A stretch of 64,000 bases of DNA, taken from NCBI GenBank assembly GCA_051294905.1, contig CM119379.1, positions 3,658,001 through 3,722,000 of the forward strand. The letters run 5' to 3'. The DNA is from Botryllus schlosseri. Taxonomy: Eukaryota. Shown here piece by piece: positions 617 through 41,766 of the stretch. The notes beneath the pieces were generated by a model. That model made no database searches, was not told the origin of the DNA, and saw nothing but the letters and a program-made list of their open reading frames with translations. The translations under genes and the position numbers were made by a program. The first letter of the stretch is position 1. Every line of letters begins with the position of its first letter.

Positions 617-688
617 TCCCAGATGGTCTAGGGGTCAGGATTCCTGGCTTTCACCCAGGCGGCCCGGGTTCGATTCCCGGTCTGGGAA
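617..688 (+). tRNA. trnE: tRNA-Glu(TTC), intact cloverleaf, no adjacent oligo-T terminator
   Basis: Acceptor TCCCAGA/TCTGGGA, anticodon arm CCTGG-CTTTCAC-CCAGG, T-loop GGTTCGATTCC. Confidence 0.92.
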
Positions 689-1816: not shown

Positions 1817-1888
1817 TCCCAGATGGTCTAGGGGTCCGGATTCCTGGCTCTCACCCAGGCGGCCCGGGATCGATTTCCGGTCTGGCAA
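1817..1888 (+). pseudogene. trnE: tRNA-Glu(CTC) pseudogene
   Basis: Anticodon CTC. B box altered (GGGATCGATTTCC) and acceptor 3' strand mismatched (TCTGGCA). Confidence 0.8.
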
Positions 1889-2126
1889 CACTCTTTCTCG
1901 AAAACGGCAATACAATTCACAGACTTTATTACCCGTAATTTCAGATGTCTTACATAAATAGACAAACATCGAAAGTCCTTGAAAGGATTGTCAGGCGATT
2001 GTAATCTTAGAATTTAGCTATATTAAGTCTAAACTACACTATCTATGCATGCACATTGCGCACTCTTTGAACTTAAATGGAACCGCCATATTCATTCGAT
2101 GGGATCAATAGCGCTGCTTTGCCGTC

Positions 2127-2198
2127 TCCCAGATGGTCTAGGGGTCAGGATTCCTGGCTTTCACCCAGGCGGCCCGGGTTCGAATCCCGGTCTGGGAA
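2127..2198 (+). tRNA. trnE: tRNA-Glu(TTC), intact
   Basis: Full cloverleaf, GGTTCGAATCC B box, TTTTT terminator at 2202-2206. Confidence 0.95.
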
Positions 2199-2369
2199 CG
2201 CTTTTTCAACTTGCATTTAAAAACGGCAATACCATTCACAAACTTTATACCATTAATTTCATACGCATAACATCAATAGAGAAACTGTATACGACTCGCG
2301 CTCCCATAAACGACAAAATATGGTACCTTATCGTGTCATATTTTCGGTAGTCGATAAAGTTTTGTATGG

Positions 2370-4061: not shown

Positions 4062-5918
4062 ACGTGTTACCTGAATAAAACTAAGGATGACTGTTGTACA
4101 CAAAATTTCGACTTCCGGACGACGCTTGACGGCGCCTCGGAATTTGCAAGAATATGATCTGTCATTCATTTTCGCAGAAAACTAGCTGCACATTTTATAT
4201 CAATTTTGCCTCAATGACTTCGCCATTGTCTTGATGACAATAGCGTGGTCTCGGTTTTCTTTCATCTTTTGTTCTAAGTCTATATTCATTATTAGACTAC
4301 CTTGCTTGATTTTTCATTGTGCAGATATGGTCGCCATGCGATTTTAGTGCATGGCTACTGATTTCTGGTCACAGATATCCGTGAAACATTTTTGTATACT
4401 CACGATTCTCTTAACATCACCTATGCCCATTACAGCTACTTGGAAAACTTGCGAATTTGGGGTACGGTTGAAGTACGGGGTCTGTAGGTCTTCGCTTTCG
4501 CTCCCGGGTCGTATATGTAATGCCGTGAGCACGGGGAACTTATGCTTCCAAGTAATTTTCCTTGTACTGGCTGTGATATCTCGCCAAACTGTTTTTAGAT
4601 ATGGGGACTGCTGGTGCGCGATTCAGCAATTCTAATGCGCATGGAATTTATGATTTGCAACCCCCCAGTTTAAACTCATACTATTTACTTTCACGATTGC
4701 ATAACGAAGCAGAAGTAGGGTTCCGCCGACTCGCGTCTCGCCCGTGCGCCATTTTCTCGAAATGATCCACTGACCGGACATTATCATACGGTTTTTGGAT
4801 GAAATAATTATCCAACGTTTAGGCGAATTATACCTATCACACCGTTATTAAGGCGTATTCCACCGGTCGATACGCCATTATTATTATTAATCAGCCTTCG
4901 AAGCACACGAAAGTAGCTGGGCGCACGTTTACATTTGCGATATGTTAGGTGTGCGTGCTGTGATTATTACTTATTTGTTATTCCTAATCTTTCGATTCGT
5001 TAACTGACCGAGTTATTGATTAGCCCGCGTCGACATGGCGATTTCATACCGACACTCGATTTAGTTCGCCAGCACAACGCACGTGTTTCGACATGCCTTG
5101 TTGACCAGTTTGACTTCTATTTCTATTCTACGTCATGATTATGACGTCACCACTACAAGTAGACGTAATTGCAACATATAGCAGTGCTAGGATTCCCCAT
5201 ACAGAGCTGAGCCATCTGCTTCGCTGCTTGCCATATGTGCATTTCCCAATTTTGTGTATACGTTTGCTTGCTACCAGTGTGTTTACCATATTATTTTGCT
5301 CGCCTGTTGTTCCCCTTCGTCATTTTCGCCCCCTAGACCGCCAAATCGCTCACGTTGGCAACCACTGGGCTAATCTACCATTCGACGTGAAAAACCAGTC
5401 ATATAACCATAACTTTAAAATTGATTAAGACATATTCCTGCAATTTGGAGCCAAGTGGCATGGTAAATACCATAACGTAGGTGACCGTTTTTCAACCACT
5501 TTCATTTATACTGCGATACCCAATGCGTATCGAATAGATCGGCTTGGGCGATAATCGCACATCCAAAGCGCATCATGGTAAAATTTGATTTGACGAGCCC
5601 GACTAGGACGGGGCTCGCGTACTTTCGGTTTTTAATGTTATTTTCTCCGTATAGCTGTAGTGACTATGGTCCGAAAGTGCATGATCCCCGCAGGTCCGTC
5701 GGTTTGTCTGTCCGTCGCCAGAACACACTTATCCGATCATCAAAAGGTTTAGGTGCAGGGAATATGACATCAAACAGAACAAATATCAAAAACAAATAAT
5801 TTTTGAAAGTCTTGCCGTTCGAGGGGTAGTTTATCCCCGTAACATGAGCAAGAGCATGTTTACTCAGTAAACTGTATGTGTGTGTATGCAATAAACCAGT
5901 AACTTCATTTTATGTGAG

Positions 5919-6920
5919 TTAAAACACATTCAACTGATCCGGCCCGCGAGACGTTTGGAGGTCTGAATCCGGCCCGCGACCCGAATTGAAATTGACACCC
6001 CTGTTGTAAAGTATACCGTCCATTGTTGTAACCCTGACTGTGTTATCACAAGCATTTATCGTGCAGTATCCGTAGCAGCAGAACCTTATTTTTTTAGATA
6101 CAGTGTTGAAGCGATGACGCTTAAAGGCAAAGGAACACCATGGATTACTTGCACTGAGGTACTTTGCAATGACATCAGTCCATCCTGAATATGTGATGGT
6201 ATTGCCTCGAGCGCTTCTTTTGAATCTCTCCCATGTACCAAAATCCATATGAAACGAAGAGCTTTCGGGTAGAGGAGTAGGGGGCCGCCAGGTGTGAACA
6301 GTCGTAAGAAACTCAAATACCTGTCCAGCGTTTGGAGTAGTATCATTCTCGTGTATTGTTTGTTCCAGGCTTGATTTCCAAGCATCTACATGTAGTCCAT
6401 CAGAGCTTTCCATTCGGATATTGGAATCGATGTCGGGAGGCGTCGCAAGACACTCAAATTCCTGTCCAGCGTCTGGGGCAGTATCAATCTCGTGCATAGT
6501 CTGTCCCAGGCTTGATTTACAAGCATCTACATGCATTCCATCAAAGTTTTTCATTCGGATATTGGAATCGATGTCGGGAGGCGTCGCAAGACCCGCAAAT
6601 TCCTGTTCAGCGTCTGGAGTATTAACATTCTCGTGCGTTGTAGATTTTGTCGTTGCTATATTGGAATCCATGCCATCGTATGTACTTTTCCACATGTCTC
6701 TACATTTTCTCTTGGCATTTCGTATATTCTCTTTCGATTTGGAAAGAACCGACGGAAAAAGTTTACTGACAAGAAATAACCATATTTCCGTCGGGGGATC
6801 TCGTGAGAAGTTGAGTTCATTTAATTTGAAAAATTCTTCAGCAGCTTGTTCAAATTTATTCCGATCAATCGTCACGACACTGCCAAATCTGCCTCCAGAC
6901 AACATTTTTCCATCAGACAA
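5919..6920 (-). CDS. Transposon-derived ORF with ~40-aa tandem repeats and a Cys/His-rich domain reminiscent of NOF/Foldback-type proteins; C-terminus replaced by a hAT MITE end
   Basis: 333 codons open. TPDAxQEFxxLATPPDIDSNIRM repeated. Motif WTDVIAKYLSASNPWCSFAFKRH...CCYGYC...C. The last ~27 codons come from a CAGGGGTGTCAA...GCGGGCCGGAT MITE end. Family assignment is recall-based. Confidence 0.45.
   Translation of the reverse strand: MSDGKMLSGGRFGSVVTIDRNKFEQAAEEFFKLNELNFSRDPPTEIWLFLVSKLFPSVLSKSKENIRNAKRKCRDMWKSTYDGMDSNIATTKSTTHENVNTPDAEQEFAGLATPPDIDSNIRMKNFDGMHVDACKSSLGQTMHEIDTAPDAGQEFECLATPPDIDSNIRMESSDGLHVDAWKSSLEQTIHENDTTPNAGQVFEFLTTVHTWRPPTPLPESSSFHMDFGTWERFKRSARGNTITYSGWTDVIAKYLSASNPWCSFAFKRHRFNTVSKKIRFCCYGYCTINACDNTVRVTTMDGILYNRGVNFNSGRGPDSDLQTSRGPDQLNVF
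6345..6680. repeat. 120-bp coding tandem repeat, ~2.7 copies
   Basis: TGTCCCAGGCTTGATTT.CAAGCATCTACATG and CGGATATTGGAATCGATGTCGGGAGGCGTCGCAAGAC recur at 120-bp spacing (e.g. 6416 and 6536-6556 regions). Confidence 0.9.
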
Positions 6921-7423
6921 CTTGACCTGACTGATACGACGGACATACGACGTTAACTGCCTCCTTCAAATGTACATATTACAAAATTGAAGAGCACGTG
7001 AGTCGGAATGGAATAGGGGCCCATTATATACAGGCACGAGTGCACATGCCAGCGGGGTGTCCGTTGTTTTGACGGAATATGACGCCATTCGAGGAATCGC
7101 GCAAAGCTTCCGCAAAACTGATTTCACGCAATGTCGATGTTTCTTTTAAATCACTGAGATATTTTGCTACATCTCTTCGTTCATATAATGGCACCCGTAT
7201 AATTACGAGACGTCTTCATTCGGTTACGCCATTGTTTTGTTTACCGCTAATTATGTTAAGTGGCCCCTTAAGAAAGCTGAGTATGCATCACATTTGGACA
7301 ACTAGATAATTATAGTTGTCTAATTTCGCTAAAATCGAGCAAAATGCCAAGTAATCTGATTCCAATCTAATTTTTTAAATGTTGTTATGCTCTAATTCTA
7401 ATTCTAATCCAATTGTGATATTT

Positions 7424-9200
7424 TTTAAAGGTGTTCCATCATAAAATCTGTTACGAAATTTGGTATATGTTGCATTGTCACAATGTCTGACAACTTCGTA
7501 CCAAATTTCGAGTTGGGGGAATGGCAAATTTCGATATTAATGTTGACTTTCCCGTCGCTGATGATAAACTTTTCCCAGTCGTGTTCCACTCTTAAGTCAA
7601 TCTTCTCCATAGAAGCACAAGCCATTCTCCACGCTCTAAAATGGATCTGCCAGAATGGCTCATACCAACAAACATATCTGATTCTATCGGACAGTCTGAG
7701 CGTGCTATCCGCTATGACCAACCTGCAGGCACCGCAAACGCAGAATGTTATATTTGAATGTGGTCGCTTGCTGAATCAAGTGGTTCAGAAAGGCGCCATT
7801 GTTGTCCTGGTCTGGGTACCGGGGCATGCTGATATCGGTGGTAATGAATTAGCTGATAAATTGGCTTGGCAAGCTGCCAGGACCAATATCGAAAATACCC
7901 CTTCTCAGACGCTTCCAGAAAAAATTAGCCACGCTGAGGCGAAAGCCGAAGTACGTCAATACTGTAGAGCGACCTGGAACGCCGAATATCAACGAAATGA
8001 GCGTGGAGGACACTATCGAAATTTCCATAGATCATTGACTGATGGCCACTTTCCATCGATGCATCGACATAGGCTTTACGAACGAATAATATTTCGGCTT
8101 CGTTCAGGCCATTGCCGCCTGAAAGCGCATTTATATAAAATTGGATGTAGCGACACCGACCTATGCGACCATTGTACAGTACCTGATACAGTCGAGCATT
8201 TTTTGCTGCACTGCAATCGATATGATTTTCATCGGAACTTTTTAATCGACAGGGCGCGCGAGCTCAAAATCACTGCAACACTCGAAAATCTACTGATCAT
8301 CCCCGAAATGTTATCCCATGTTGCAGAATTTGTTATATCTTGTGGTACTTACTTGTAAATCGGTTATTGACCATATTTTGGTAAATCGCTCATTCTAGTC
8401 CGTGATGCACCTGGCCTTACAGGCGAAAAGCGTCACTCATCTTTTCATCAATAATAATAATAATAACATAAAATATGTTACGAAAATTGGTATGTTGCAT
8501 TGTCATAATGTCCTACAACTTCGTACCAAATTTCGAGTTGGGGGAATGGCAAATTTCGATATTAAAGTTGACTTTGTATAGGTGCGTGCTACAGTCCCGT
8601 AACGATATTGAAGTTGACTGTGTATATGTGCGTGCTATGCTACCGTAAAATAGATTAACGCAACGCAAAAGTCGGTATAGAACTGCGTTAGTTTTAAAGG
8701 TGTTCCATCATAAAATATGTTACGAAATTTGGTATGTTGCATTGTCATAATGTCCTACAACTTCGTACCAAATTTCGAGTTGGGGGAATGGCAAATTTCG
8801 ATATTAAAGTTGACTATGTATAGGTGCGTGCTACAGTCCCGTAACGATATTAAAGTTGACTGTGTATATGTGCGACGTGCGTGCTACGCTCCCGTAAAAT
8901 AGATTAACGCAAAAGTCGGTATAGAACTGCGTTAGTTTTAAAGGTGTTCCATCATAAAATATGTTACGAAATTTGGTATGTTGCATTGTCATAATGTCCC
9001 ACAACTGCGTACCAAATTTCGAGTTGGGGAAATGGCAAATTTCGATATTAAAGTTGATTATGTATAGGTGCGAGCTACGCTACCGCAAACAGATGTAACG
9101 GAAAAGTCGATGTTGGACGGCGTTGGTTTTGAAGGCGTTTCATCCTAAAATGGTTGACGAAATTTGGTATGCTACACCTTAATGATGTTGGCTAACACTG
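7424..9200. repeat. ~240-bp tandem repeat array (3-4 units) interrupted by a LINE
   Basis: CATAAAATATGTTACGAAATTTGGTATGTTGCATTGTC...ACCAAATTTCGAGTTGGGG recurs near 7440, 8467, 8709 and 8952, then decays. Confidence 0.9.
7551..8466 (+). mobile_element. 5'-truncated I-group (I/Nimb-like) non-LTR retrotransposon 3' end: RNase H plus zinc knuckle
   Basis: RNase H motifs IFSIEAQAI, ILSDSLSVL, WVPGHADIGGNELADKLA; RLRSGH; CDHCTVPDTVEHFLLHC; stop at 8358; (AAT)n tail 8450-8466. The ORF-track start at 7483 lies in the host repeat. Confidence 0.9.
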
Positions 9201-10149
9201 TTATGAGTTTCGTGATTGGGTCTCAATTAGCGGAGTAGTAATTCGTTATCAAAATCGAGTATCTAATAATGTCGCGGTGAACTGGCATCTAGCCTGCGCG
9301 TGAGTGTGTACGCGTGCATTCACCGATTCGAGGCTCGGATCCCCCGTCATTTTCCGAGGCTGGATTTCCGAGGCTGTGATCCCCTTTGGTGTACAGGCAG
9401 GCCAAAGCTACACGGTCAGTGCACAAGTAAAAGCTGAGCGGCTGAACGTATATAATAAAGTTAATAACTTGAAAATGCGACTTTCAGAGCAATGCGTCCT
9501 GGATTTTTTCTGTGGCGAATCAGGAAAATGACTTTGTCTCAAATCCAACTAGGAGAATGGCAAGAGTGCCGATGCACGCGCGCACACAAATAAATGGAAT
9601 CAAAATATATATAGGTATATTATTTGGATTTGGTAAGTATCGAGAATAAAAAACTTCAAGTAAATTTCCGCAGATGAATTGAATGGATATGAACGCTGTC
9701 TATTAATTCAAGACGACCGCAAATAGAATAAAAAACCATCCGCTGATTTCAATCGTCTGTAGTATACGAAGAAGGCGTAAAGAATAGCAAATCCTTCCAA
9801 GCATGTTCCCATGAGCCCTGTTATGACTCCGTGTTCTTTATATTTCACCACATTAATGATGAAAAGCACGAAGTTGGTCGTCACCATAATAACGTAAATC
9901 ACTGAAAAGTAAGAAAGGATTCACATTCAATAGCGTTCTTGTAAGGGATATATTGGCAAACATTTTTGTAGAAAGGAAAGGTATATTTAGGGCAGGGTTT
10001 CCCAACCTGTAGGCCATGGTCCGTTGCGGGCCACGAGACCGTCAGAGGAGCACGCAAATATTTTATCATCCACAAGTCTATAGTCCACGATAACAAACGA
10101 AATAAATTAAAACTTATCCGCTTAAGCTTGACGCTGAGCGTTCAAAGCC

Positions 10150-10350
10150 ATAATTTCTGCCATTGGCGAATATCTGTTGGATGATCCCGCCTGTGCGAAA
10201 AATTATCGAGACGACAGACTTTGCGTCATCAAGAGGGGCCGCTCACACTTTCACTTGTGTGCCTTGAAGTCGACCTTTATCAAAATGCACCAGCCCAAGT
10301 TTTGTCGACAAAAGGAGTTCATGGACCATCTTAAAATAATACATTCGATG
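10150..10350 (+). pseudogene. Penelope GIY-YIG C-terminal fragment (copy 2)
   Basis: SAIGEYLLDDPACAKNYRDDRLCVIKRGRSHFHLCALKSTFIKMHQPKFCRQKE matches SAIGQHLLTHPECAKSFKDSRFSILARGRS of 43437-44033. Confidence 0.8.
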
Positions 10351-10830
10351 GTTTTTGATTCACCATGAGTAGACAACGGGCCATCTACAACAGTTGGACT
10401 AAACGGGCTACACAGTGGTTCGGAACCTTTTTCGACACATCGCCTCCTTATCAATCTCGAAATTTTCGCCCCCTCCCCCCCACCCATATTTAAGGATCCG
10501 AAAATATGACATATTACCTAAACGGGCAATCACTGGTAATTTTACTACTAAAATAGACATTTTCCGAAGTAGGAACACCGGTTTCCGCGTCTAATTTTCG
10601 TTGATTCGGCATTTTTTTCGCGTCATATGCAGAATAAGCAGTTCTAAAATGTTCGTGTCCTAGTATCATTTGGTATTTTCGCCCTCTTGTTTCTCAAAAT
10701 TGCCCACTGGGCCCGATATCGTCCACGTTGGGAACCACTGGTCTAATCTATCTGTGCATGCCAAACTCTTTGGATTCAAGTGGAACCACCAGATTGGTTT
10801 CCTGAGATGAACAGCTCCCGTGTCAACGTC

Positions 10831-10902
10831 TACCAGATGGTCTAGGGGTCAGGATTCCTGGCTCTCACCCAGGCGGCCCCGGTTTGATTCCCGGTCTGGG
10901 AA
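10831..10902 (+). pseudogene. trnE: tRNA-Glu(CTC) pseudogene
   Basis: Acceptor 5' TACCAGA mismatched and T-arm GGCCCCGGTTTGATTCC altered. Confidence 0.8.
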
Positions 10903-11147
10903 CACTTTTTCAACTTGAATTCGAAAACGGCAATACAATTCAGACTTTATTACCCGTAATTTCAGATGTCTAACATAAATAGATAAACATCGAAAATCCT
11001 TGAAAGGATTGTCAGTCGATTGTAATCTTAGAATTTAGCTATATTAAGTCTAAACTAAACTATCTATGCATGCACATTGCGCACTCTTTGAACTTAAATG
11101 GAACCGCCAAATTGATTCAGTGAGATCAATAGCGATCCTCCGCCGTC

Positions 11148-11219
11148 TCGCAGATGGTCTCGGGGTCAGGATTCCTGGCTTTCACCCAGGCAGCCCGGGT
11201 TCGAATCCCGGTCTGGGAA
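11148..11219 (+). tRNA. trnE: tRNA-Glu(TTC) variant, probably impaired
   Basis: Glu cloverleaf with acceptor mismatch (TCGCAGA) and A14>C in the A box; TTTTT terminator follows. Confidence 0.7.
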
Positions 11220-11356
11220 CGCTTTTTCAAGAAGTCATTTTCCGCAGATGAATTGAATGGATATAAACGCTGCCTATTAATTCAAGACGACCGCAAATAG
11301 AATAGAAAACCATCCGCTGATTTCAATCGTCCGTAGTATACGAAGAAGGCGTAAAG

Positions 11357-12656
11357 CAGTGGTTCCCAACCTTTATTGTCTTCATTCCCCACTTCAGATT
11401 TATTCCGAGCCGTCATTCCCCACCAGGACTTTGAGCGCACGAAACGCGAAAAATTTATATAGGCTAATTCATGTTTGAATCGGTCAATATGATCGGGAAT
11501 TGCATATATTTTGCTATCAATTTTTTATCCCCTCTCTGCTCACGTAATCAGATTTACCTGTAGAGCTGCGTGAGGTGTTTTGGAAAAGGTAGGACCCCTA
11601 AATATGAATTTAACATCTTCGGGCAGACCCCTTGATATATTGACTTCGTTACATCATGCTATTTCGTGACCTCCAATATCTGCTATGTCAAAAGACATGG
11701 AAATCGCCAAAGCTAAAAGGCACACACGATTTCAAATTGGTATTGCTTTACTGGCAAATAATTTTTTCCCTGCGGGATGACATTTTTCCTGTGGGGTTCA
11801 GATCGCCAGGCCAGGAACATTCGGCACCAGCCATATAGCCGCCTACGGATAATTGAACATATCAAAATTTTCGGTCAACACATGGGCATTCCTTCTCGGC
11901 CAAGGTCTTCTTGCTGCTGATCGTTCTGGCACACTTCTCGGAGCCCCATGTTACATGGCCTTTAACTTCATACATGTCTTGGTACGTCGTGGCGCAGTAT
12001 TGGCCGACGCCGAAGTCTATATTTCTGTAAATTCTACATATTTTCGTGGGGGAAGGGTACCCAATAATCAAAATATGAGGCAATATTAAATCTCGCGCCC
12101 ACTGAAAAAAAATTTGAATAAGTGACATAAATTCCCAAAAATATATTCTATAATTTATGTTAATTCACGAAATCATTTTGGGCCCCTTCGAGCTCCCCCC
12201 CCCCTCCCAATTGGGGTTAAGGTCCTGTTCGCCACTACCCAACACTTTTGTCATCACAGAACAGCTATTTGCTGTTTGACTAAACAAGACACGCAATCAC
12301 ACCAATACGCAAGACAATCGTAAATATAACTGCAACGTAAAACGTTTTGTGAACCGATACCAGTAACGCTCAAAATTTCGCGAAAGCATTATTTCACGTC
12401 AAACTAGTCGTGCTGGATGCGTTTGTGACGTCATCATTGGCCATCCAAAGTTAAAAAATGAGGTTTTGTGAACACCGCGCAATATAATTTTCGATACATA
12501 CATTCCAGAGCAGTTAACTGGTAGCGGTAATTGCGCATATGTCTACATGAATATGAAGACTGTCCTGTAGATAATTCTGAGCAACGCGTCTATTCCCCAC
12601 CAGAAACCATTGAATTCCCCACTAGTGGGGAATTCCCCACCGTTTGGGAACCACTG
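11357..12656 (+). mobile_element. Non-autonomous hAT (Buster/Charlie-type) element, copy X
   Basis: TIRs CAGTGGTTCCCAAC / GTTTGGGAACCACTG. Near-identical in reverse complement to 18459-19714 and 24159-25905. Flanks GCGTAAAG and GTCTAGAG do not match each other. Confidence 0.9.
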
Positions 12657-13472
12657 GTCTAGAGGCCCCGCTGGGTGTCTGATTTCAATGACTACTCAAT
12701 TTCATTTCGACAGCAGCTTCTTCATTGTATCGCAGTCTTGTGGTGTTTTGCATTAATGAAAATTATTAACAAACTGAATCGAGTAAACTGAACTATACAT
12801 AAGGCTAATCAACATTTTACTGGATTCACCATGTAAAAAATAACTGAAACCGCTGCGGGGGGGGGGGGGGGGGGGGGGGTCAGTAACGAAGTACTTCTAC
12901 TTGTCGCAGTAGGCTACTTCAAGTATATTTTGCGCACTTTCATTACTTTCTCAAGTGATTTTGATATTAAACTACTTCTACTTGACAGTTTTCGGCATTT
13001 CAGGCAAAACTGGGCCCGATATAGTTATGCTTCATTAGGCCTACTTGTAAATCGCTAGTTCTACATTTGTAGAAATTATGTGCGTTACACTCTACTTGAG
13101 TGAGACGATGGCTACATTAACCATACCTCTGTGTGAATATACCATCCAATTACAAAGTCACAGTATGTATAAATGGGTATATCAAAACAGCATAGTAGAA
13201 ATTTATTTAACTTGGCAAAAATAGAATGGATGAAAGGGTTGATTTTTCAAAATTTTAGATCCTTGCCGGTAGATCTTCGGCGGCGTGTAAAAGAGACTCA
13301 CACTTGCTGGTTTCACGTGCGTAGCGTAGATGATGTGTAATTCTATCATGCTTTACTCTGTTTCATGAATTCCCTAGCAGTCATGAATTGCGTATCACTA
13401 TGACGCTTTGAAACTGGGAGACTGAATGTGAACAGCATACTAAGCTACTAGTACATCGAAAATGTCTGGAGT

Positions 13473-15086: not shown

Positions 15087-15168
15087 GACGAGGTGGCCGA
15101 GTGGTTAAGGCGATGGACTGCTAATCCATTGTGCTCTGCACGCGTGGGTTCGAATCCCATCCTCGTCG
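15087..15168 (+). tRNA. trnS: tRNA-Ser(GCT)
   Basis: 82 nt; acceptor GACGAGG/CCTCGTC+G, anticodon arm ATGGA-CTGCTAA-TCCAT, long variable arm, GGTTCGAATCC. Confidence 0.97.
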
Positions 15169-15171
15169 CGT

Positions 15172-15243
15172 GGGGACGTAGCTCAGTGGTAGAGCGCACG
15201 CTTCGCATGTGTGAGGTCCCGGGTTCAATCCCCGGCGTCTCCA
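15172..15243 (+). tRNA. trnA: tRNA-Ala(CGC)
   Basis: 72 nt; acceptor GGGGACG/CGTCTCC+A with G3:U70, anticodon arm CACGC-TTCGCAT-GTGTG, GGTTCAATCC. Confidence 0.97.
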
Positions 15244-15246
15244 AAC

Positions 15247-16110: not shown

Positions 16111-18458
16111 AAATACCAGCAATTGAAGGTTTTTCCTATTTTCTTTTACTCTTCATGACGCCAGGTGAGGCACTGCCCCATTTGCCTCCCCCGCAGCCAC
16201 CCGCCAATGCTGCATTTCGTTCTTGATGTTGTGTCATTGCGGGTAACTCAAAGCAGAGAGTCACTAAATATTCACAAAGCGAAAGCTGAATATTTTGAGC
16301 AAACTTCTAACAAAGAAATTAAAATTTTTGAAAAGGGTAAAATTGCAGAGGTTTGAAGTTTGAATGGAAATAATTCCAGCCGCAAAGATAGCGTGTGAAA
16401 ATGTAATACATGAAAATGGTCCACAGTGCAGAACATACCAAGGTTCGTTTGTGAACGCGGTCCTCCAGCTTTATGAGGTTCACACACCGAATGCGAACGT
16501 GAACTTCACGTTCACACCATCCCTAGTAAATAGGTTAAGTATAGGCGCAATAATACTCTTCTAGATAATCTGTCTTTGACCAGCATCCACGTAAAACGAA
16601 CGAATACGACCCCAAGAAAAGGAAAAGTCGCTTACGAAAATTACTATTTTATGAAAAGTATTCGTTCAATCCAGCCAATGGATCGGAGTGGTTCTCAACC
16701 TTTTTCACCTTGCGGACCGGTAAAATGTCAAAAATATTTGGCGGACCGGTGGATTTCCAAAAATTGAAATTAAACCAAAATTAAAAGTATGCCACCGTTT
16801 TCTTGTAGGTATATGGTGATAGCAAGTGACATTTTGAGGGTTTTGATCGTAATTAATTATATTCAAGCTGGCAACCATGTGATTTTACGGTAGCGAATCT
16901 GCTTAGTCGATGTAATAGGCTATCACCTTGCCCGGAGCAACGTGCTACCGCCTAGAGTCGTTCACAGTCTTACGCCTCCGAAGACCGCGGATTTAACCGA
17001 CCATGATAACTCGACAATATCGTAAGAAGAAGCGTTTCGGAGTTTAACCAAGCACCTTATCGTGCTAACTTACTCATTGCCCACTACGACCAGACGTAAG
17101 CTATTCTGGCTACTACGAATACAATGCGCCGCACGAAAACAACTGACAACAGCTATACCTATAGCCACCAACATAGTCAGGGCCGATTAAGCACTTCCTC
17201 AGCTCACCCCCAACACACCATATAGTCTTCCCCCCAGGGTGATAAACCAAAGCTCTCCTGGCCCCACGTTTGCATGGATGTTTTCACCAGTACTGTAGGG
17301 AAAGAGTAAATGTGGCGTAATCGTGTGTGAGTACTTTCTAATTCATGGCTGAATCAGTCAGTATTATTGATAACACTGGTCAACAAAATGAAAAAAAAAA
17401 ATTTAGGCAGAACATCTGAGAGCCGTTTCTGGGGTTTTTGAGGTTGCTGATTACGAATATCACATCAGTTTTGTCAGATTGGCTCTTTGTCAGAAGATAT
17501 TTATACCCCTAAAAAAAGCCCAAAATTACTGTATGTAGGCCTACCCTTAAATATTTCACTTGGTATGAAGAAAATCGTCGTTTTTTGCTAATTTAATACT
17601 GCGCATGAATACATAATTGACTAAGAAGAACCCTCATGTTATTCTCACTTATTCTATCAATATTAACATGACATGATGCAAAATATTTGTTTGTTAAAAT
17701 AGAAGTTTATCAAGCCCACGAATTGTAGCCTACTTTTGCACAACAGAAACGCATCAATCCTGTATCAATTGATAATTCTACCAAGATTAAAGAGAAGTAT
17801 AAAACTATAAAATTTGCCCTTGAAGAGCTTAACTACCGTATGAGTCTCATTTTTTTGATTGTTAAATGGATAATTTTCCGCTGAGTCAACAAAGTGGGTA
17901 TACCTAGTAACCCTATCAAACGTGAAGCTTAAATCTGGTATCTGGTATAGGCGTATTCGTATACCGAATGAAAGATTCCAATTTCACATTAGGAATGAGT
18001 TCACTGTATGTAATTTCTCCTGAGATGTAGTAAATAAAACTTTTTAGATGATCGCGAAGCACTCAACTACAAACAAACCGTCCGAAAATTCGTATCTGCA
18101 TATCGAAAACTTGAGCACAAACATGAGCATAAAAGTTCACTTCCTGTTCAGTCGTCTTGATATATATATTTCCTGATCATCTTGTTGATTAGCAAGGGGA
18201 GAGGTTCTATCAAGACATCATAACAACAAAAGACAGATATTAAGGCCGATGAGATGAACAATTGAACATATTATGGCAGACCATTGCCGGAACCTTTCGA
18301 GAAACTGCACTAAATAGCTTACAGGTGAAATCGTACAAAAAAAGTTGTTCTTTAAAATAAATTCATAATATTATGTTCCAACTGATTATTTCGAATTTAC
18401 AATGGGTTGCTGACGTAAAATTGATTAAATTAATGTCACGTTATTTGACTATCTAGGC

Positions 18459-19714
18459 CAGTGGTTCCCAAACGGTGGGGAATTCCCCACTAGTGGGGAA
18501 TTCAATGGTTTCTGGTGGGGAATAGACGCGTTTGCTCAAAATTATCTACAGGACAGTCTTCATATTCACGTAGACATATGCGCAATTACCGCTACCAGTT
18601 AACTGCTCTGGAATGTATGTATCGAAAATTATATTGCGCGGTGTTCACAAAACCTCATTTTTAACTCTGGATGGCCAATGATGACGTCACAAACGCATCC
18701 AGCACGACTAGTTTGACGTGAAATAATGCTTTCGCGAAATTTTGAGCGTTACTGGTATCGGTTCACAAAACGTTTTACGTTGCAGTTATTTACGATTGTC
18801 TTGCGTACTGGTGTGGTTGCGTGTCTTGTTTAGTCAAACAGCAAATAGCTGTTCTGTGATGACAAAAGTCTTGGGTAGTGGCGAACAGGACCTTAACCCC
18901 AATTGGGGGGGGGAGCTCGAAGGGGCCCAAAATGATTTCGTGAATTAACATAAATTATAGAATATATTTTTGGGAATTTATGTCACTTATTCAAATTTTT
19001 TTTCAGTGGGCGCGAGATGTAATATTGCCTAATATTTTGATTATTGGGTACCCTTCCCCCACGAAAATATGTAGAATTTACAGAAATATAGACTTCGGCG
19101 TCGGCCAATACTGCGCCATGACGTACCAAGACATATATGAAGTTATAGGCCATGAAACATGGGGCTCCGAGAAGTGTGCCAGAACGATCAGGAGCAAGAA
19201 GACCTTGGCCGAGAAGGAATGCCCATGTGTTGACCGAAAATTTTGATATGTTTAATTATCCGTAGGCGGCTATATGGCTGGCGCCGAATGTTCCTGGCCT
19301 GGCGATCTGAACCCCACAGGAATAATGTCATCCCGCAGGGAATCGTGTGTGCCTTTTAGCTTTGGCGATTTCCATGTCTTTTGACATAGCAGATATTGGA
19401 GGTCACGAAATAGCATGATGTAACGAAGTCAATATATCAACGGGTCTGCCCGAAGATGTTAAATTCATATTTAGGGGTCCTACCTTTTCCAACACACCTC
19501 ACTCAGCTCTACAGGTAAATCTGATTACGTGAGCAGAGAGGGGATAAAAAATTGATAGTAAAATATATGCAATTCCCGATCATATTGACCGATTCAAACA
19601 CGAATTAGCCTATATAAATTTTACGCGCTTTGTGCGCTCAAATTCCTGGTGGGGAATGACGGCTCGGAATAAATCTGAAGTGGGGAATGAAGACAAAAAG
19701 GTTGGGAACCACTG
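18459..19714 (-). mobile_element. hAT element copy Y
   Basis: TIRs CAGTGGTTCCCAAAC / GGTTGGGAACCACTG. Shares the GCGTAAAG junction with copy X and has a small internal deletion relative to X and Z. Confidence 0.9.
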
Positions 19715-20433
19715 CTTTACGCCTTCTTCGTATACTACAGACGATTGAAATCAGCGGATGGTTTTTTATTCTATTTGCGGTCGTCTTGAATTAATAGGCA
19801 GCGTTTATATCCATTCAATTCATCTGCGGAAATTGACTTGAAGTTTTTTATTCTCGATACTTACCAAATCCGAATAATATACCTATATATATTTTGATTC
19901 CATTTATTCGTGTGCGCGCGTACATCGGCACTCTTGCCATTCTCATAGTTGGATTTTAGACGAAGTCATTTTCCTGATTCGTCACAGAAAAAATCCAGGA
20001 CGCATTGTTCTGAAAGTCGTATTTTCAAGTTATTAACTTTATTATATACGTTCAGCCACTCAGCTTTTACTTGTGCACTGACCGTGTAGCTTTGGCCTGC
20101 CTGTACATTAAGGCGATAAAACTGTCTGTACTGAATGACACTTCGTAGCGTTATTTGTACTTTATCAGCCTTAGCGACTACGTTGCCCTCTTCAGTGAAG
20201 ACTTATTGGCCCTTTCTTTGGCTTTTCTTTTAGTATCTGTAATAGCTTATTACTTTTGTTTGCCATACAAAACTTTATCGACTACCAAAAATATGACACG
20301 ATAAGGTACCGTATTTTGTCGTTTATGGGGGCAAATGTCGTATACAGTTTCTCTATCGATGTTAGGCGTCTGAAATTACTGGTATAAAGTTTGTGAATGG
20401 TATCGCCGTTTTCAAATACAAGTTGAAAAAGCG

Positions 20434-20505
20434 TTCCCAGACCGGGAATCGAACCCGGGCCGCCTGGGTGAAAGCCAGGAATCCTGACCCCTAGACCATC
20501 TGGGA
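20434..20505 (-). tRNA. trnE: tRNA-Glu(TTC), intact, carried in the composite
   Basis: Reverse complement is a full cloverleaf followed by a TTTTT terminator. Confidence 0.95.
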
Positions 20506-20750
20506 GGCGGCGGAGGATCGCTATTGATCTCACCGAATCAATTTGGCGGTTCCATTTAAGTTCAAAGAGTGCGCAATGTGCATGCATAGATAGTTTAGTT
20601 TAGACTTAATATAGATAAATTCTAAGATTACAATCGACTGACAATCCTTTCAAGGATTTTCGATGTTTATCTATTTATGTTAGACATCTGAAATTACGGG
20701 TAATAAAGTCTGAATTGTATTGCCGTTTTCGAATTCAAGTTGAAAAAGTG

Positions 20751-20822
20751 TTCCCAGACCGGGAATCAAACCCGGGCCGCCTGGGTGAGAGCCAGGAATC
20801 CTGACCCCTAGACCACCTGGTA
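20751..20822 (-). pseudogene. trnE: tRNA-Glu(CTC) pseudogene
   Basis: TACCAGG acceptor mismatches and T-loop TTTGA. Confidence 0.78.
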
Positions 20823-21309
20823 GACGTTGATAGGGGAGCTGTTCATCTCAGGAAACCAATCTGGTGGTTCCACTTGAATCCAAAGAGTTTGGCATGCACA
20901 GATAGATTAGACCAGTGGTTCCCAACGTGGACGATATCGGGCCCAGTGGGCAATTTTGAGAAACAAGAGGGCGAAAATACCAAAGTATACTAGGACACGA
21001 ACATTTTAGAACGGCTTATTCTGCATATGACGCGAAAAAAATGTCGAATCAACGAAAATTAGACACGGAAACCGGTGTTGCTACCTCGGAAAATTGGCTA
21101 TTTTAGTACTAAAATTACCAGTGATTGCCCGTTTAGGTAATATGTCCTATTTTCGGATCCTTAAATATGGGTGGGGGAGGGGGCGAAAATTTCGAGATTG
21201 ATAAGGAGGCGATGTGTCGAAAAAGGTTCCGAACCACTGTGTAGCCCGTTTAGTCCAAATGTTGTAGATGGCCCGTTGTCTACTCATGGTGAATCAAATA
21301 CCATCGAAT

Positions 21310-21520
21310 GTATTATTTTAAGATGGTCCATGATGATGTCCTTTTGTCGACAAAACTTGGGCTGGTGCATTTTGATAAAGGTCGACTTCAAGGCACACAA
21401 GTGAAAGTGTGAGCGGCCCCTCTTGATGACGCAAAGTCTGTCGTCTCGATAATTTTTCGCACAGGCGGGATCATCCAACAAATATTCGCCAATGGCAGAA
21501 ATTATGGCTTTGAACGCTCA
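21310..21520 (-). pseudogene. Penelope GIY-YIG fragment (copy 3, inverted)
   Basis: Reverse complement of 10150-10350; ORF 21284-21481. Confidence 0.8.
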
Positions 21521-22597
21521 GCGTCAAGCTTAAGTGGATAAGTTTTAATTTATGTCGTTTGTTATCGTGGACTATAGACTTAGAGATGATAAAATATTTG
21601 CGTGCTCCTCTGACGGTCTCGTGGCCCGCAACGGACCATGGCCTACAGGTTGAGAAACCCTGCCCTAAATATACCTTTCCTTTCTACAAAAATGTTTGCC
21701 AATATATCCCTTACAAGAACGCTATTGAATTTGAATCCTTTCTTACTTTTCAGTGATTTACGTTATTATGGTGACGACCAACTTCGTGCTTTTCATCATT
21801 AATGTGGTGAAATATAAAGAACACGGAGTCATAACAGGGCTCATGGGAACATGCTTGGAAGGATTTGCTATTCTTTACGCCTTCTTCGTATACTACAGAC
21901 GATTGAAATCAGCGGATGGTTTTTTATTCTATTTGCGGTCGTCTTGAATTAATAGACAGCGTTCACATCCATTCAATTCATCTGCGGAAATTTACTTGAA
22001 GTTTTTTATTCTCGATACTTACCAAATCCAAATAATATACCTCTATATATTTTGACGCCATTTATTTGTGTGCGCGCGTGCATCGGCACTCTTGCCATTC
22101 TCATAGTTGGATTTGAGACAAAGTACATTTTCCTGATTCGTCACAGAAAAAATCCAGGACGCATTGCTCTGAAAGTCGCATTTTCAAGTTATTAACTTTA
22201 TTATATACGTTCAGCCACTCAGCTTTTACTTGTGCACTGACCGTGTAGCTTAATTTGGGCCTGCCTGTACATTACGGCGATAAAACTGTTTGTACTGAAC
22301 GGCACTTTGCAGCGTTATTTGTACTTTATCAGCCTTAGCGACTACGTTGCCCTCTTCAGTGAAGACTTATTGGCCCTTTCTTTGGCTTATGTTTTAGTAT
22401 CTGTAGTAGCTTATTAATTTTGTTTGCCATACAAAACTTTATCGACTACCGAAAATACGACACGATAAGGTACCGTATTTTGTCGTTTGTGGGAGCGCGA
22501 GTCGTATACAGTTTCTCTATTGATGTTAAGCGTCTGAAATTAATGGTATAAAGTTTGTGAATGGTATTGCCGTTTTTAAATGCAAGTTGAAAAAGCG

Positions 22598-22669
22598 CTC
22601 CCAGACCGGGAATCGAACCCCGGCCGCCTGGGTGAAAGCCAGGAATCCTGACCCCTAGACCATCTGGGA
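22598..22669 (-). tRNA. trnE: tRNA-Glu(TTC) variant
   Basis: Cloverleaf with one T-stem mismatch and a G discriminator; terminator present. Confidence 0.7.
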
Positions 22670-22907
22670 GACGGCGAAGGTGCGCTATTGATCCCATCGA
22701 ATGAATATGGCGGTTCCATTTAAGTTCAAAGAGTGCGCAATGTGCATGCATAGATAGTTTAGTTCAGACTTAATGTAGCTAAATTCTAAGATTACAATCG
22801 ACTGACAATCCTTTCAAGGACTTTCGATGTTTGTCTATTTATGTAAGACATCTGAAATTACGGGTAATACAGTCTGTGAATTGTATCGCCGTTTTCGAGA
22901 AAGAGTG

Positions 22908-22979
22908 TTGCTAGACCGGGAATCGATCCCGATCCGCCTGGGTGAGAGCCAGGAATCCGGACCCCTAGACCATCTGGGA
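22908..22979 (-). pseudogene. trnE: tRNA-Glu(CTC) pseudogene
   Basis: Mirror of 1817-1888; B box GGGATCGA, acceptor disrupted. Confidence 0.8.
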
Positions 22980-24095
22980 GACCTTGACACGGAGCTGTTC
23001 ATCTCACGAAACCAATCTGGTGGTTCCACTTTAATCCAAAGAGTTTGGCATGCATAGATAGTTTAGACCTGGGGTTCCCAACCGGTGGGGAATTCCCCAC
23101 TGGTGGGAAATTCAATGGTTTCCACTGGGGAATTGACGTATTTGTTTAACATACAGGGTAGTCTACATATTTACGGACGCTCATGCGCGATTGCCGGAAT
23201 GTATAAAAAAATATATAAATTGAAAATGTCCTCGGAGGACGCTCAAATGTCCTCTTTTAGAGGGATTTGTCCTCTTCTCCGCTGAAAAGGATTTCAATGC
23301 CACGAAAACTGCGACTCGTTTCGTAAAAAATCGGGGGTTGAGTAAAAGTGATGACCGTTATTTTAGTCAACACAATACGCTCGATCGAAAAAATTTCAAA
23401 ATCACCCTTTTTTGAAGCTTTCAGATCTTCTTTTTAGGATCTCAAAATATGGTTTGATATTTTGAAGCAGGAGCGGGCAACTTCGCTCTCCAATCGGCAG
23501 GCCTGATATATGAAAATTAGGAACTAGGCGGGCCGGATTGCTGAATCGATACATTATTCGCCCATTTATCCACACATACAAGGAATAAATCGTATTTAAT
23601 GAATGTATTTTAACGACCGCAATGTCACTTCAAAGACATTTCTCGCCGATAATGCCGAAGACAATGTGGATTAGAGAACAGCATTGTCATACAGGCGCCG
23701 CCATATTTGCTTCTCTCAGATTAATTAACACATGGTCCATTCCTTAATTAAGATTTCAATGCGTTCGATAAGCCCGCGGAACTGCAAATTTACCAAGATA
23801 TCAAGTCATTAGAGTTGAGTAGGCCTGCATTTTAAATGTCGATAATTCAAGTCTTCTCGCTTCGACGAACTTACACGTAAGCTTCACTCTCGCACGCTGC
23901 GCACACACGTATATAATAACATACATTCAATAGAATTTGACGTAGTAGGCAAGTAGTGGGGAATCTCGGTAGACTGGGGCCGCAGGCTACATTATCATTA
24001 CAAACGGGAGACTGTCCGCGGACCGGACGAAATAACATCTTGAATCACGGGTCTGTGAATGGTATTACCGTTTTCGAATTCAAGTTGAATAAGAG

Positions 24096-24158
24096 TTCCC
24101 AGACCGGGAATCGAATCCGGGCCGCATGGGTGAAAGCCAGGAATCCGGACCCCTAGAC
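24096..24158 (-). pseudogene. trnE: tRNA-Glu(TTC) truncated in the D-arm by the hAT end
   Basis: Mirror of tRNA nt ~627-688. The 5' ~9 nt are replaced by the TIR of copy Z starting at 24159. Confidence 0.88.
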
Positions 24159-25905
24159 CAGTGGTTCCCAAACGGTGGGGAATTCCCCACTAATGGGGAA
24201 TTCAATGGTTTCCGGTGGGGAATAGACGCGTTTGCTCAAAATTGTCTACAGGACAGTCTTCATATTCACGTAGACATATGCGCAATTACCGCTACCAGTT
24301 AACTGCTGTGGAATGTATGTATCGAAAATTATATTGCGCGGTGTTCACAAAACCTCATTTTTAACTCTGGGTGGCCAATGATGGCGTCACAAACGCATCC
24401 AGCACGACTGGTTTGACGTGAAATAATACTTTCGCGAAATTTTGAGCGTTACTGGTATCGGTTCACATAACGTTTTACGTTGCAGTTATTAGCGATTGTT
24501 TTGCGTGCTGGTGTGGTTGCGTGTCTTGTTTAGTCAAACCAGCAATTAGCTGTTCTGTGATGACAAAAGTGTTGAGTAGTGGCGAACAGGACCTAAACCC
24601 CAATTGGGGGGGGGGAGCTCGAAGGGGCCCAAAATGATTTCGTGAATTAACATAAATTATAGAATATATTTTTGGGAATTTAAGTCACTTATTCAATTTT
24701 TTTTTCGGTGGGCGCGAGATTTAATATTGCCTAATATTTTAGGCTTACCATATTTTGGAAATGTAAAAAGAGGACACTTTTTCAGAAATTTCAGACATGC
24801 AAAACTGGAGAAGAATTCTCAAAAACCGGTAAATTTCTCTCACTTCGTGATCGGTTGACTAAAAAAAAAAGGTCATCACTTCCGCTCAGAGCTCAAAATA
24901 ACGTTTTTCTCTCTACATTGCCAATTGCCAGGTGGATGACTGAAAAAAAAAGGTCTTCTTTTCGCTCAGAGCTTAAATCACCACTTTTCCCTCCGAAATA
25001 CCTGCCGGAGCTTCACTTCTGCGGTAATTTAGGGCATATCACTCGCGATTTCCTCTAAATCTGACCTAAATTTTCAAAAAAGAGGACAAAATCTCAAAAA
25101 AGAGGACAAAAGGGCGTCCTCCGAGGACACTTTCAAAAAAGTCAAAAAAGAGGACAAATCATCTTAAAAGAGGACGTATGGTAAGCCTATAATATTTTGA
25201 TTATTGGGTACCCTTCCCCAACGAAAATATGTAGAATTTACAGAAATATGGACTTCGGCGTCGGCCAATACTGCGCCACGACTCACCAAGACATATATGA
25301 AGTTATAGGCCATGTAACATAGGGCTCCGAGAAGTGTGCCAGAACGATCAGCAGCAAGAAGACCTTGGCCGAGAAGGAATGCCCATGTGTTGACCGAAAA
25401 TTTTGATTTGTTTAATTATCCATAGGCGGCTATATGGCTGGCGCCGAATGTTCCTGGCCTGGCGATCTGAACCCCACAGGAAAAATGTCATCCCGCAGGG
25501 AAAAAATTATTAGCCAGTAAAGCAATACCAATTTGAAATCGTGTGTGCCTTTTAGCTTTGGCGATTTCCATGTCTTTTGACATAGCAGATATTGGAGGTC
25601 ACGAAATAGCATGATGTAACGAAGTCAATATACCAACGGGTCTGCCCGAAGATGTTAAATTCATATTTAGGGGTCCTACCTTTTCCAACACACCTCACTC
25701 AGCTCTACCGGTAAATCTGATTACGTGAGCAGAGAGGGGATAAAAAATTGATAGCAAAATATATGCAATTCCCGATCATATTGACCGATTCAAACATGAA
25801 TTATATAAATTTTTCGCGCTTCGCTCGCTCAAAGTCCTGGTGGGGAATGACGGCTCGGAATAAATCTGAAGTGGGGAATGAAGACAAAAAGGTTGGGAAC
25901 CACTG
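24159..25905 (-). mobile_element. hAT element copy Z (contains nested MITE)
   Basis: Same TIRs and internal sequence as X and Y. Confidence 0.9.
24740..25189. mobile_element. hAT MITE nested in copy Z
   Basis: TIRs TAGGCTTACCATA / TATGGTAAGCCTA, exact TSD TAATATTT, subterminal AAGAGGACA repeats. Absent from X and Y. Confidence 0.9.
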
Positions 25906-28467
25906 ATCTAGGCAAATACTTATATAGGCCTACGTGACTGGAGTTTATTTATGTAGGCCTACATGATATCCGTGAAAGTCTGTAACTATGATAGATCTAT
26001 TAATCCTAACTATAGTGTTGTTGCTGTATTTTGATTGAAAAGAGTCTTCGGTGTGTAAAAATAACAAGTAGATTGAATTTCTAAAGTTTATAGTACAACT
26101 GAGCCGATTTTATATCTACTCTCTACCGTGAAAATGTGAGATTTTTGTCCAAATAGCCCCATGGGTTATCTCCACAACAAGAGCCAATTTGAAAAAACTA
26201 CGGTCATATTCGGAATCAGTGCCCTTCAGAACCCTCAAAACCACTCTTACTTTTTCTGCCTAAAAATATGTGTTGACCAGTGTATTAGGATATATATATT
26301 GCTATTAATTTACGATTCTAAATTGGTATTTCTTCACTGGGAAATAATTTTTCTGCTGGTAAGGCATTTGTCCTGTGGGGTACAGATTGCTAGGACAGCG
26401 GGATTCGTCGCCAGCCATTTAGGCGCCTATATGGACAATTAGACATACATATATATCGAAGTTTTCGGTCAACAAAGAGCAGTCCTTTTCGGCCAAGGTT
26501 TTCTCGCTGCCGAATGCTTGGCACACTTTTCGGAATCCCATGTTAGCCTCAACTTGATTATGTGTTAGTACGTCATACGCGCGGTGATGGCTCACGCCGA
26601 AATGCCTATTTGTATATATCATGCGTATTTCTTGGGGAAAGGGCACCAAATATTCTAGACATTTAGTGACACTAAATCACACAGAGCACGAAAAAAATTG
26701 AAACAGTTGGATGAAGTTTAAAAAATACTCTATAATTTATGCTAATAATTCATAAAGTAATTTTTGGCTCCTTCAAGCTCGGCCCGCTCCAAACTGCGTG
26801 ATTTAGCGGGTCAGTTTTTACATGTCGCTCGCATGTCGCCAAATGACACGTCTTGAACTTCAAGTCATATCGAATATGTAACCTCACGAAGTTCTGAATC
26901 TGTTTAAAATTGTAATATACCTGGCGGACCGGCAGGAAAGTCGTCGCTGACCTGCACCGGTCCGCGGACCGGCGATTGAGAACCCTTGATTTATGTACCG
27001 GATTGCTTGGTTCCGCTCACACCACATTGTCGCCCATATCAAATATTTCATCACAGTAAATATGTCCCACCATGACATTTGAAACTGCCGTTTCGCAATC
27101 TATCATTTACCTTATCATATCGTAATCTAGCAGCCCATGACATGTCCTGCTAATATGGAAAATCCGGGTTTTATAACGTTGCACCTGTTTTCTCAGATCA
27201 CCTTTGAAGCTTTATGGACAAAAGAGATGAATAAATTTTCCGCTTTTAGAAGTGGTATTTGTATTTCACGTTCAATTCCGAGTTTCAAACTTTGAGTTCT
27301 AATAACTTTCAGTTCGTTTGTCTGCAGAACATACATATGTTGAATCGTATAAAGCAAGTGTAGTAATGCCTCTATTTTCCGAAAATAAAGCTACGCTAAA
27401 TATAAATTTTACGATCCACAATATTTCTTATTACCGTATAATAATCGCGCAAAGTGTTGGAACCGTATCCGATATAACTTCTCCCTATTATTATTCGCCT
27501 AAACTTGGGGTCTTATAATATGGGGTAGGGCGTCATGCCATGATGTTCTCTAAAACGGGGTCTCTAGTAGAGAAATCGCATTTTCATATCAATACTATAA
27601 TTTGCATCACATGATGCGAAAGAATGCATATTCTGTCGAAAATTGATACCTCTTGGGATGAGTCAATACGAATCAAAGCTCTCTGCACCTTCTGCATAGC
27701 CCAATTTGCAGCTTTTGACAGTCCATGCGAACGAATTAAGACCGTTTTCAAACTACTTACTTATAGTTGAGTAGATTTAAAAGTCAGTCAAATCTACTTC
27801 TACTTAAAGTAGTTTTAGGGGGCTCGTGTAAGAAGTACTTATACTCGTACTTGAGTAGATTTTTTCGACACTACTTCTACTTCTACTTGAGTAGCTTTCA
27901 TGACTACATTGACCATCCCTGCGTACAGCTTGCAAATCGCGCATAGAGCGAAGAAATTTTGAAATGTATGGAATCTGCCACAAAATACTCTATAATTTTG
28001 TTGATTTGCGTAATAATTTTGGGGCCTCTTCGAGCTCGCCTCCTCCCAATTGGAGCGTTTGGGTGTGCGGCAGTTAGTTAGGGCTTACGGCCCTGTCTAC
28101 ATGTAGTTTGCTTCTCAAAGCTACGATGAAGAGCTGCTTGATGCTCCGGAGCTGCCATAGAAAATATATAGACCTTCATATGCTGTTCATGTGGCGTATT
28201 TAGGCCTACTAAATTAGGAATGTAAGAGAATGAAAGAGTGAAAATTGTCAAAGAACATATAAAAATTGGGCGTGCTATTATTTAATATCAATTCGAGATG
28301 ATTAATCGTATAGGCATTAATATTTGCATCGCTCAAGACATCTACAATACAATGCCATACACAAGAGACAATAATGGATCGGTACGAGTATTTTGAAATG
28401 ACTAAATAAGGCCTAACGCCGATGTGTCCGACCTTGACCTTTCGGCTGCGTTTTCTTTAGACGCCCT

Positions 28468-29561: not shown

Positions 29562-41766
<12,205 letters not shown>

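Follow-up and report, generated by a model that had tools for sequence, protein, structure and literature searches.

A 7.4-kb unit of two hAT elements and an inverted tRNA-Glu array in Botryllus schlosseri: a candidate natural macrotransposon

The window analyzed here is a stretch of 64,000 nucleotides from Botryllus schlosseri (assembly GCA_051294905.1, contig CM119379.1, positions 3,658,001 to 3,722,000 of the forward strand), and its subject is a unit in which two directly repeated hAT elements, designated E1 and E2, enclose an inverted copy of a nearby array of transfer RNA (tRNA) genes for glutamate, at the end of which lies a third copy of the element, E3. A first-pass annotation of the window had proposed that the outer ends of E1 and E2 were transposed together with the DNA between them. 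In what follows, the structure of the unit and of its source is described, the descent of the three element copies is established as far as their sequences permit, and joint transposition is weighed against other ways in which the same arrangement may have arisen.

Structure of the unit and of its source array

The elements were delimited by a self-comparison of the first 27 kb of the window together with direct reading of the element ends, and the directly repeated hAT pair described in the first-pass annotation was recovered by both (Table 1). E1 and E2 have the termini CAGTGGTTCCCAAAC ... GGTTGGGAACCACTG, lie in the same orientation and have intact ends; their terminal inverted repeats (TIRs), both of which read CAGTG... 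from the end inwards, agree at 13/13 bases (14/15), and the motifs GTGGGGAA and ATTCCCCAC are repeated in the subterminal 250 nt of the element. Elements of the hAT superfamily produce 8-bp target-site duplications (TSDs) and have short TIRs with the terminal motif YARNG (PMC3014272), and the ends found here conform to that motif. E1 and E2 are classed as non-autonomous because no open reading frame (ORF) of more than 101 amino acids is present in the 7,447-bp unit. E2 is longer than E1 only because it contains a nested 450-bp miniature inverted-repeat transposable element (MITE), the empty site of which is carried by both E1 and E3. Part of this MITE has a word depth of ~4e5 in the unitigs of the sample, which ranks it with the commonest repeats in the genome.

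The whole unit, and not either element, is bounded by a target duplication. The two copies of the 8-mer ATCTAGGC enclose a distance of 7,447 bp and match exactly, while the inner flanks are unlike, with CTTTACGC after E1 and CCCTAGAC before E2, so that the duplication is confined to the outer ends, as had been reported. Duplications of 8 bp are also seen around other members of the family in the window and around the nested MITE (TAATATTT); taken singly, E1, E2 and E3 have none, and the possibility that each of them is a simple insertion was rejected, since the flanks of each agree at only 5/8 positions.

A perfect outer match could in principle be fortuitous, in which case an ordinary inverted segmental duplication, or recombination among copies of the family, might have produced the arrangement with no joint integration at all. 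The properties of the family favour such coincidences: it is very high in copy number (word depth 1e4-1e5, compared with ~35 in unique stretches), the region is dense in transposons (26 end-like matches in the window, compared with 1.5 expected), and the flanks beside the ends in the window are biased towards approximately nnCTAGnC, with a central TA. A position-weight model that takes this bias into account, trained on 24 (or 10) further junction flanks from the window, still gives a probability of only 1.2e-4 to 5e-4 that a left and a right flank agree at 8/8 positions, and the duplicated DNA stops exactly at the element termini on both sides; we therefore regard a fortuitous match as very unlikely. 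The same bias is visible inside the unit, where the inner flank of E2, CCCTAGAC, holds the top-scoring target motif nnCTAGAC, a motif that is also found at other left-end junctions. As to the surroundings of the target site, the DNA to its right is high-copy (word depth 1e4) from near TAGGCCTAC at 25954, over 25954-26517, and an older element with ~73% similarity to the E1/E2 family lies at 26312-26780.

The proposal that the cargo is an inverted copy of the tRNA-Glu locus is confirmed by the alignment of its reverse complement to the two parts of the source array, with the substitution levels listed in Table 1; the internal units of the cargo, 19715-20926 and 21873-23082, differ from each other by 6.3%. 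The tRNA genes were called with ARAGORN and Rfam. Five added copies of tRNA-Glu had been claimed, and four of these are full-length genes, but the fifth is a dead fragment that lacks its first 9 nt because E2 starts there, so that the inner flank of E2 is a tRNA D-arm which reads GTCTAGGG in the sense of the tRNA and CCCTAGAC in the direction of the element. The further claim of at least one intact gene with a terminator is sound: the copy at 20434-20505 has a run of five T residues 3' of the gene (flank gcTTTTTc) and is the only one in the cargo to equal the score of the best source copy. The gain in gene dosage thus stands for one clearly intact gene and is smaller than claimed, with three weaker genes and one truncated. 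Each array unit also has a hAT-type end ~90 bp upstream of tRNA-Glu (513-527, 1713-1727 and 10726-10740), copies of which lie in the cargo (20913-20927 and 23069-23083); because such an end is present in every unit, these old hAT remnants belong to the repeated unit itself.

The source array has not remained as it was when it was copied. It lacks 583 bp (at 11230-11232) that are retained both in the copy (19840-20422) and in the paralogous unit, and at 2370-9389 it contains 7,020 bp where the copy and the paralogous unit hold 155 bp; its tRNA at 11148-11219 is decayed (49.4 bits), and the counterpart of this tRNA in the cargo is the intact gene at 20434-20505. Since the source arm was altered after the copying by this deletion and this 7-kb block, further change there is plausible. 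Within the block are two sets of tandem repeats, of 141 bp (6301-6636) and 244 bp (8467-9078), and an ORF (7483-8358) that encodes an RNase H domain; no terminal repeats were seen in it. In the spacer between the two arms, genes for tRNA-Ser(GCT) and tRNA-Ala(CGC) lie on one strand at 15087-15244, 1-3 nt apart, with scores of 66-67 bits.

Table 1. Coordinates of the elements, duplications, tRNA genes and compared segments in the window
Feature	Position	Strand	Details
tRNA-Glu(TTC), intact; orthologous to the truncated cargo copy	617-689	+	61.7 bits
Source array, distal part	626-2369	+	matches 24158-22427
Source array, proximal part	9390-11356	+	matches 22271-20423 and 19839-19715
E3, donor-side element at right end of source array	11357-12656	-	overlooked in the first-pass annotation
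TSD ATCTAGGC, left copy (8 bp)	18451-18458	+	exact match to 25906-25913
E1, non-autonomous hAT element, sister copy of E3	18459-19714	+	1,256 bp
Cargo, inverted tRNA-Glu array copy	19715-24158	-	4,444 bp; two 2,158-bp units + 128 bp
Cargo segment compared with source 11232-11356	19715-19839		2.40% substitutions (3/125)
Cargo segment compared with source 9390-11230	20423-22271		2.23% substitutions
Cargo segment compared with source 626-2369	22427-24158		2.61% substitutions
tRNA-Glu(TTC), intact	20434-20505	-	61.7 bits (Rfam); sequence identical to 617-688
tRNA-Glu(CTC), weakened	20751-20822	-	45.8 bits; acceptor-stem mismatch
tRNA-Glu(TTC), slightly degenerate	22598-22669	-	52.5 bits
tRNA-Glu(CTC), degenerate	22908-22979	-	34.7 bits; probably a pseudogene
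tRNA-Glu without first 9 nt	24095-24158	-	abuts left end of E2 at GTCTAGGG
E2, family and orientation of E1, other source copy	24159-25905	+	1,747 bp
MITE nested in E2	24740-25189	.	450 bp; TIR TAGGCTTACCATA; TSD TAATATTT at 24732-24739 and 25190-25197
TSD ATCTAGGC, right copy (8 bp)	25906-25913	+	exact match to 18451-18458
Family member	35551-36820		perfect 8-bp duplication CACTATAC
Family member	44493-45923		8-bp duplication with one mismatch
Family member	47292-48865		8-bp duplication with one mismatch

A third element copy and the descent of E1 and E2

The relationship between the unit and its source is fixed by E3. The junction of E3 with the array reads CCACTG/CTTTACGC and runs on into array sequence, as does the inner junction of E1; E1 and the cargo are collinear with the reverse complement of the array and E3, a single alignment spanning the junction (19341-19839 against 11731-11232), and the two arms cease to be homologous at the outer element terminus, that of E1 in one arm and of E3 in the other. 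Because the divergence between E1 and E3 (1.99% substitutions) is about that of the cargo from its source (2.23-2.61%), E1 and the cargo were evidently copied together from the array and E3.

The second element has a different history. E2 differs from E1 by 3.28% and from E3 by 3.50% substitutions, and in a three-way alignment the sites at which one element is odd number 30 for E2, 11 for E1 and 14 for E3, a distribution that departs from the equal thirds of a star tree (chi-square 11.4, 2 df). Sixteen of the sites at which E2 is odd can be polarised by the 80%-identical copy at 35551-36820, and at 9/16 the state shared by E1 and E3 is the derived one. To judge by these alignments, then, E1 with the cargo is one inverted copy of the array with E3, and E2 comes from a different source copy. 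Models in which E2 is a simultaneous copy of E3, that is, single-element models involving sister chromatids, are disfavoured by the 30/11/14 pattern and by the nine polarised sites. E1 is E3-like at all informative sites from nt 35 to its end, and a template switch in the middle of the element was rejected, since E1 shows no chimeric pattern. The likeness of E1 and E3 may also have been produced by later gene conversion between the two.

Origin of the unit

Belief and doubt are about evenly balanced, in our judgement, on the proposal that the 7.4-kb unit arose by hAT macrotransposition over 5.8 kb, the best of the readings considered here. Two direct non-autonomous elements of one family would have stood around part of the tRNA-Glu array, and a hAT transposase acting in trans would have paired the right end of one with the left end of the other; the unit would then have been inserted, inverted, into ATCTAGGC, 5.8 kb away, with duplication of that 8-mer, and the donor, retained on a sister chromatid or restored by gap repair from the homolog, would be represented today by the array and E3. 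The partner element, E0, would have occupied the tRNA at 617-689, within its D-arm; either E0 would have been lost later, or the haplotype used as template for the repair would never have carried it. The perfect outer duplication, the direct orientation of the elements and the presence of a donor 5.8 kb away with E3 fit a macrotransposon; the outer ends of both elements are competent, the inner flanks are unrelated, and the distinctness of E2 is what would be expected if E2 derives from the second element. Joint transposition of the outer ends, as first proposed, is accordingly supported in part, but the donor locus, which has E3 with the identical junction, has no element equivalent to E2 at 617-625.

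This absence is the first of several points that weigh against macrotransposition. Neither an element nor an excision footprint was found at 617-625 or in the tRNA at 617-689, and because that tRNA is intact and without a footprint, either an additional loss event or a differing or heterozygous donor haplotype must be assumed. The lack of a target duplication around E3 implies that the locus has undergone other end- or break-mediated rearrangements. Only one of the four junctions, that between the tRNA and the left end of E2, is covered by reads, and these are from the assembly's own sample; neither the empty form TTATTTGACT-ATCTAGGC-AAATACTT nor any other allele was seen, the runs of other samples sharing repeats only. 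Finally, a single resident E2 followed by break-induced copying also fits the sequence. The absence of E0 may be accounted for in four ways: E0 may have been excised later and its site repaired from the paralog or the homolog; the gap in the donor may have been repaired from a homolog that never carried E0; E0 may have been removed by a crossover with an E0-free haplotype; or it may lie to the left of the window, the present junction of E2 having been produced by a later adjacent deletion like that envisaged for E3.

The flanks of E3 bear directly on this last possibility. They are unlike, GCGTAAAG at 11349-11356 and GTCTAGAG at 12657-12664, and E3 by itself is thus not bounded by a target duplication. 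At 9782/9783 the paralogous site is uninterrupted and continues as AATAGCAAATCC; since that sequence was not found beyond E3, an ordinary insertion of E3 into the array was rejected. The pattern suggests an end-adjacent rearrangement (an element-adjacent deletion or another end-mediated event) that occurred before or with the copying. It also raises the possibility of other forms of alternative transposition, in which the outer ends of the unit integrated jointly while the insert was at first different or larger, and a later transposase-made adjacent deletion set the left end of E2 beside the tRNA; variants include a composite insertion formed by re-replication, and a macrotransposon whose second donor element lay to the left of the window. 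The signature of such a process is displayed by E3, with the preferred target CTCTAGAC on one side and GCGTAAAG continuing elsewhere in the paralogous unit, a preferred target motif stands at the tRNA junction, and composite insertions in maize with 8-bp duplications and microhomology joints are on record (PMC4270019). At least two events are needed, however, the window contains no sign of a formerly longer insert, and a standard composite insertion keeps the donor flank at both elements, so that an element beside the tRNA is required once again. We consider an origin of this kind quite improbable.

Another alternative dispenses with the second donor element altogether. E2 would have been inserted alone at ATCTAGGC, creating the duplication, and a break at its left end, caused by a transposase cut or nick or by a collapsed replication fork, would have been repaired by copying E3 and the array. 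Begun on the sister copy, synthesis would change template after no more than some tens of bases, to the inverted E3 5.8 kb away, and would copy 5.7 kb of E3 and tRNA array (4.4 kb of it array); the microhomology CTAG[A/G]CCA, common to the tRNA D-arm and the junction of target and E2, would then have let the new strand rejoin E2 at its left end. This scheme accommodates the intact tRNA at 617-689 and places both new junctions at a single point, the left terminus of E2, where the D-arm sequence CTAGACCA agrees with the ATCTAGGC/CA junction at 7/8 positions. E3 and a resident E2 would moreover form a 1.3-kb inverted repeat, and inverted repeats are a known substrate for template switching. Room for a switch near the end exists, given that the first difference between E1 and E2 is at nt 35 and the first outgroup-polarised site with a derived state in E1 and E3 is at about nt 226, but since E1 is E3-like from nt 35 onwards the switch would have to be confined to the first 3-18% of the element. 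A synthesis tract of 5.7 kb and two template switches are required as well, the left junction is perfect and without a footprint, and a strand primed straight from the flank would be mismatched 2 nt from its 3' end (ATCTAGGC compared with CTCTAGAC). On balance this repair scheme seems to us rather unlikely, though it deserves more weight than any other competitor of macrotransposition.

With three copies of the element and both arms of the array packed into 26 kb, the assembly itself must also be questioned, for repeats with 96-98% identity could have been misjoined. The search of sequencing runs returned one matching sample (X1-X4, X12), probably the source of the assembly, and its reads, in the form of short unitigs only, were placed on 22900-26900 at 97% likeness. 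A unitig of X1 (24080-24177) is exact across the tRNA/E2 junction and reaches 19 nt into the element, a support that is non-independent and weak. Indels and numerous diagnostic sites nonetheless separate the arms, which differ by 2-3.5%, and a misjoin would not yield a perfect 8-bp duplication; although the check rested on short unitigs, we think an artefact extremely improbable. Stretches specific to the cargo are at single-copy depth, and the 7.4-kb unit has therefore not been multiplied further. In a small number of further samples 4-10% of the flank words are present, with no depth at all over the unique stretch 26518-26651; what these samples share is therefore repeats and not the locus itself. 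No paralogous empty site was found within the window, and metagenome scans with both target flanks gave no match.

Elsewhere in the window, two further ORFs lie at 51152-52594 and 43437-44033; one has a reverse transcriptase domain (E 1.8e-32) and the other a weak match to GIY-YIG (E 5e-4, under the Pfam cut-off), and both are probably retroelement remnants.

Relation to known systems

If the joint transposition of the outer ends is correct, the locus would be a rare natural case in an animal, with a macrotransposon and its donor side by side at ~2% divergence and a cargo that holds at least one intact gene for RNA polymerase III. The promoters of tRNA genes are internal to the gene, and a moved copy can therefore work at once; the carried genes may be active, and the activity of MITEs would have a direct route to a change in tRNA copy number. 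The unlike flanks of E3 indicate in addition that element ends at this locus took part in other rearrangements. A broader proposal, that pairs of high-copy hAT MITEs recurrently copy and disperse working tRNA genes here, and that the tRNA-Glu array may itself have been built and reshaped by end-pair reactions, is speculative and on present evidence unlikely; were recurrent joint mobilisation true, transposase would be one of the forces behind tRNA gene dosage.

The template switching known from rearrangements of the duplication-inverted triplication-duplication type (DUP-TRP/INV-DUP) places an inverted copy beside one member of an inverted repeat, with the second joint at a microhomology. That process normally leaves a chimeric element, whereas E1 has no E2-like part after nt 34. 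The likeness to bacterial composite transposons would lie in the use of two copies of a simple element to mobilise the DNA between them by means of their outer ends. Unlike pairs of bacterial insertion sequences, the Botryllus elements would depend on a eukaryotic hAT enzyme, which acts by cut-and-paste with hairpin flanks, and they are non-autonomous, with the transposase supplied from elsewhere.

Among eukaryotic systems, reversed-ends transposition with re-replication at maize p1 generates composite insertions whose internal joints have 0-4 bp of microhomology (PMC4270019). There too, element ends flank segmental copies of neighbouring DNA and an 8-bp duplication surrounds the whole, but in a composite insertion each end carries its own donor flank, and in the present unit only E1 does so, with the flank of E3; the inner flank of E2 is array sequence that has no adjoining element in the donor. 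The internal joint in Botryllus is, moreover, an exact E2 terminus at a preferred target motif, and the locus shows neither a tandem duplication nor a deletion partner.

The closest parallel is provided by the Ac/Ds macrotransposons of maize (Huang and Dooner 2008; Wang et al. 2022, both as cited in PMC9910405), for which it is described that the donor copy can stay while the unit reinserts nearby (PMC9910405). On the macrotransposition reading the two systems have in common that two direct hAT elements or ends move with the DNA that they enclose, the 8-bp duplication is found only on the outside, reinsertion is linked, and the donor can be retained, so that copy number rises. The Botryllus case differs in that it is natural rather than the product of a genetic screen and belongs to the genome of a marine animal, in that the family is present in very many copies and both of the elements are non-autonomous members of it, ~1.3 kb long, in that the cargo consists of tRNA genes, and in that the second donor element is missing from the present donor. 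The mechanism is thus one already established for maize Ac/Ds, of which the Botryllus locus would be a new natural example with a tRNA cargo.

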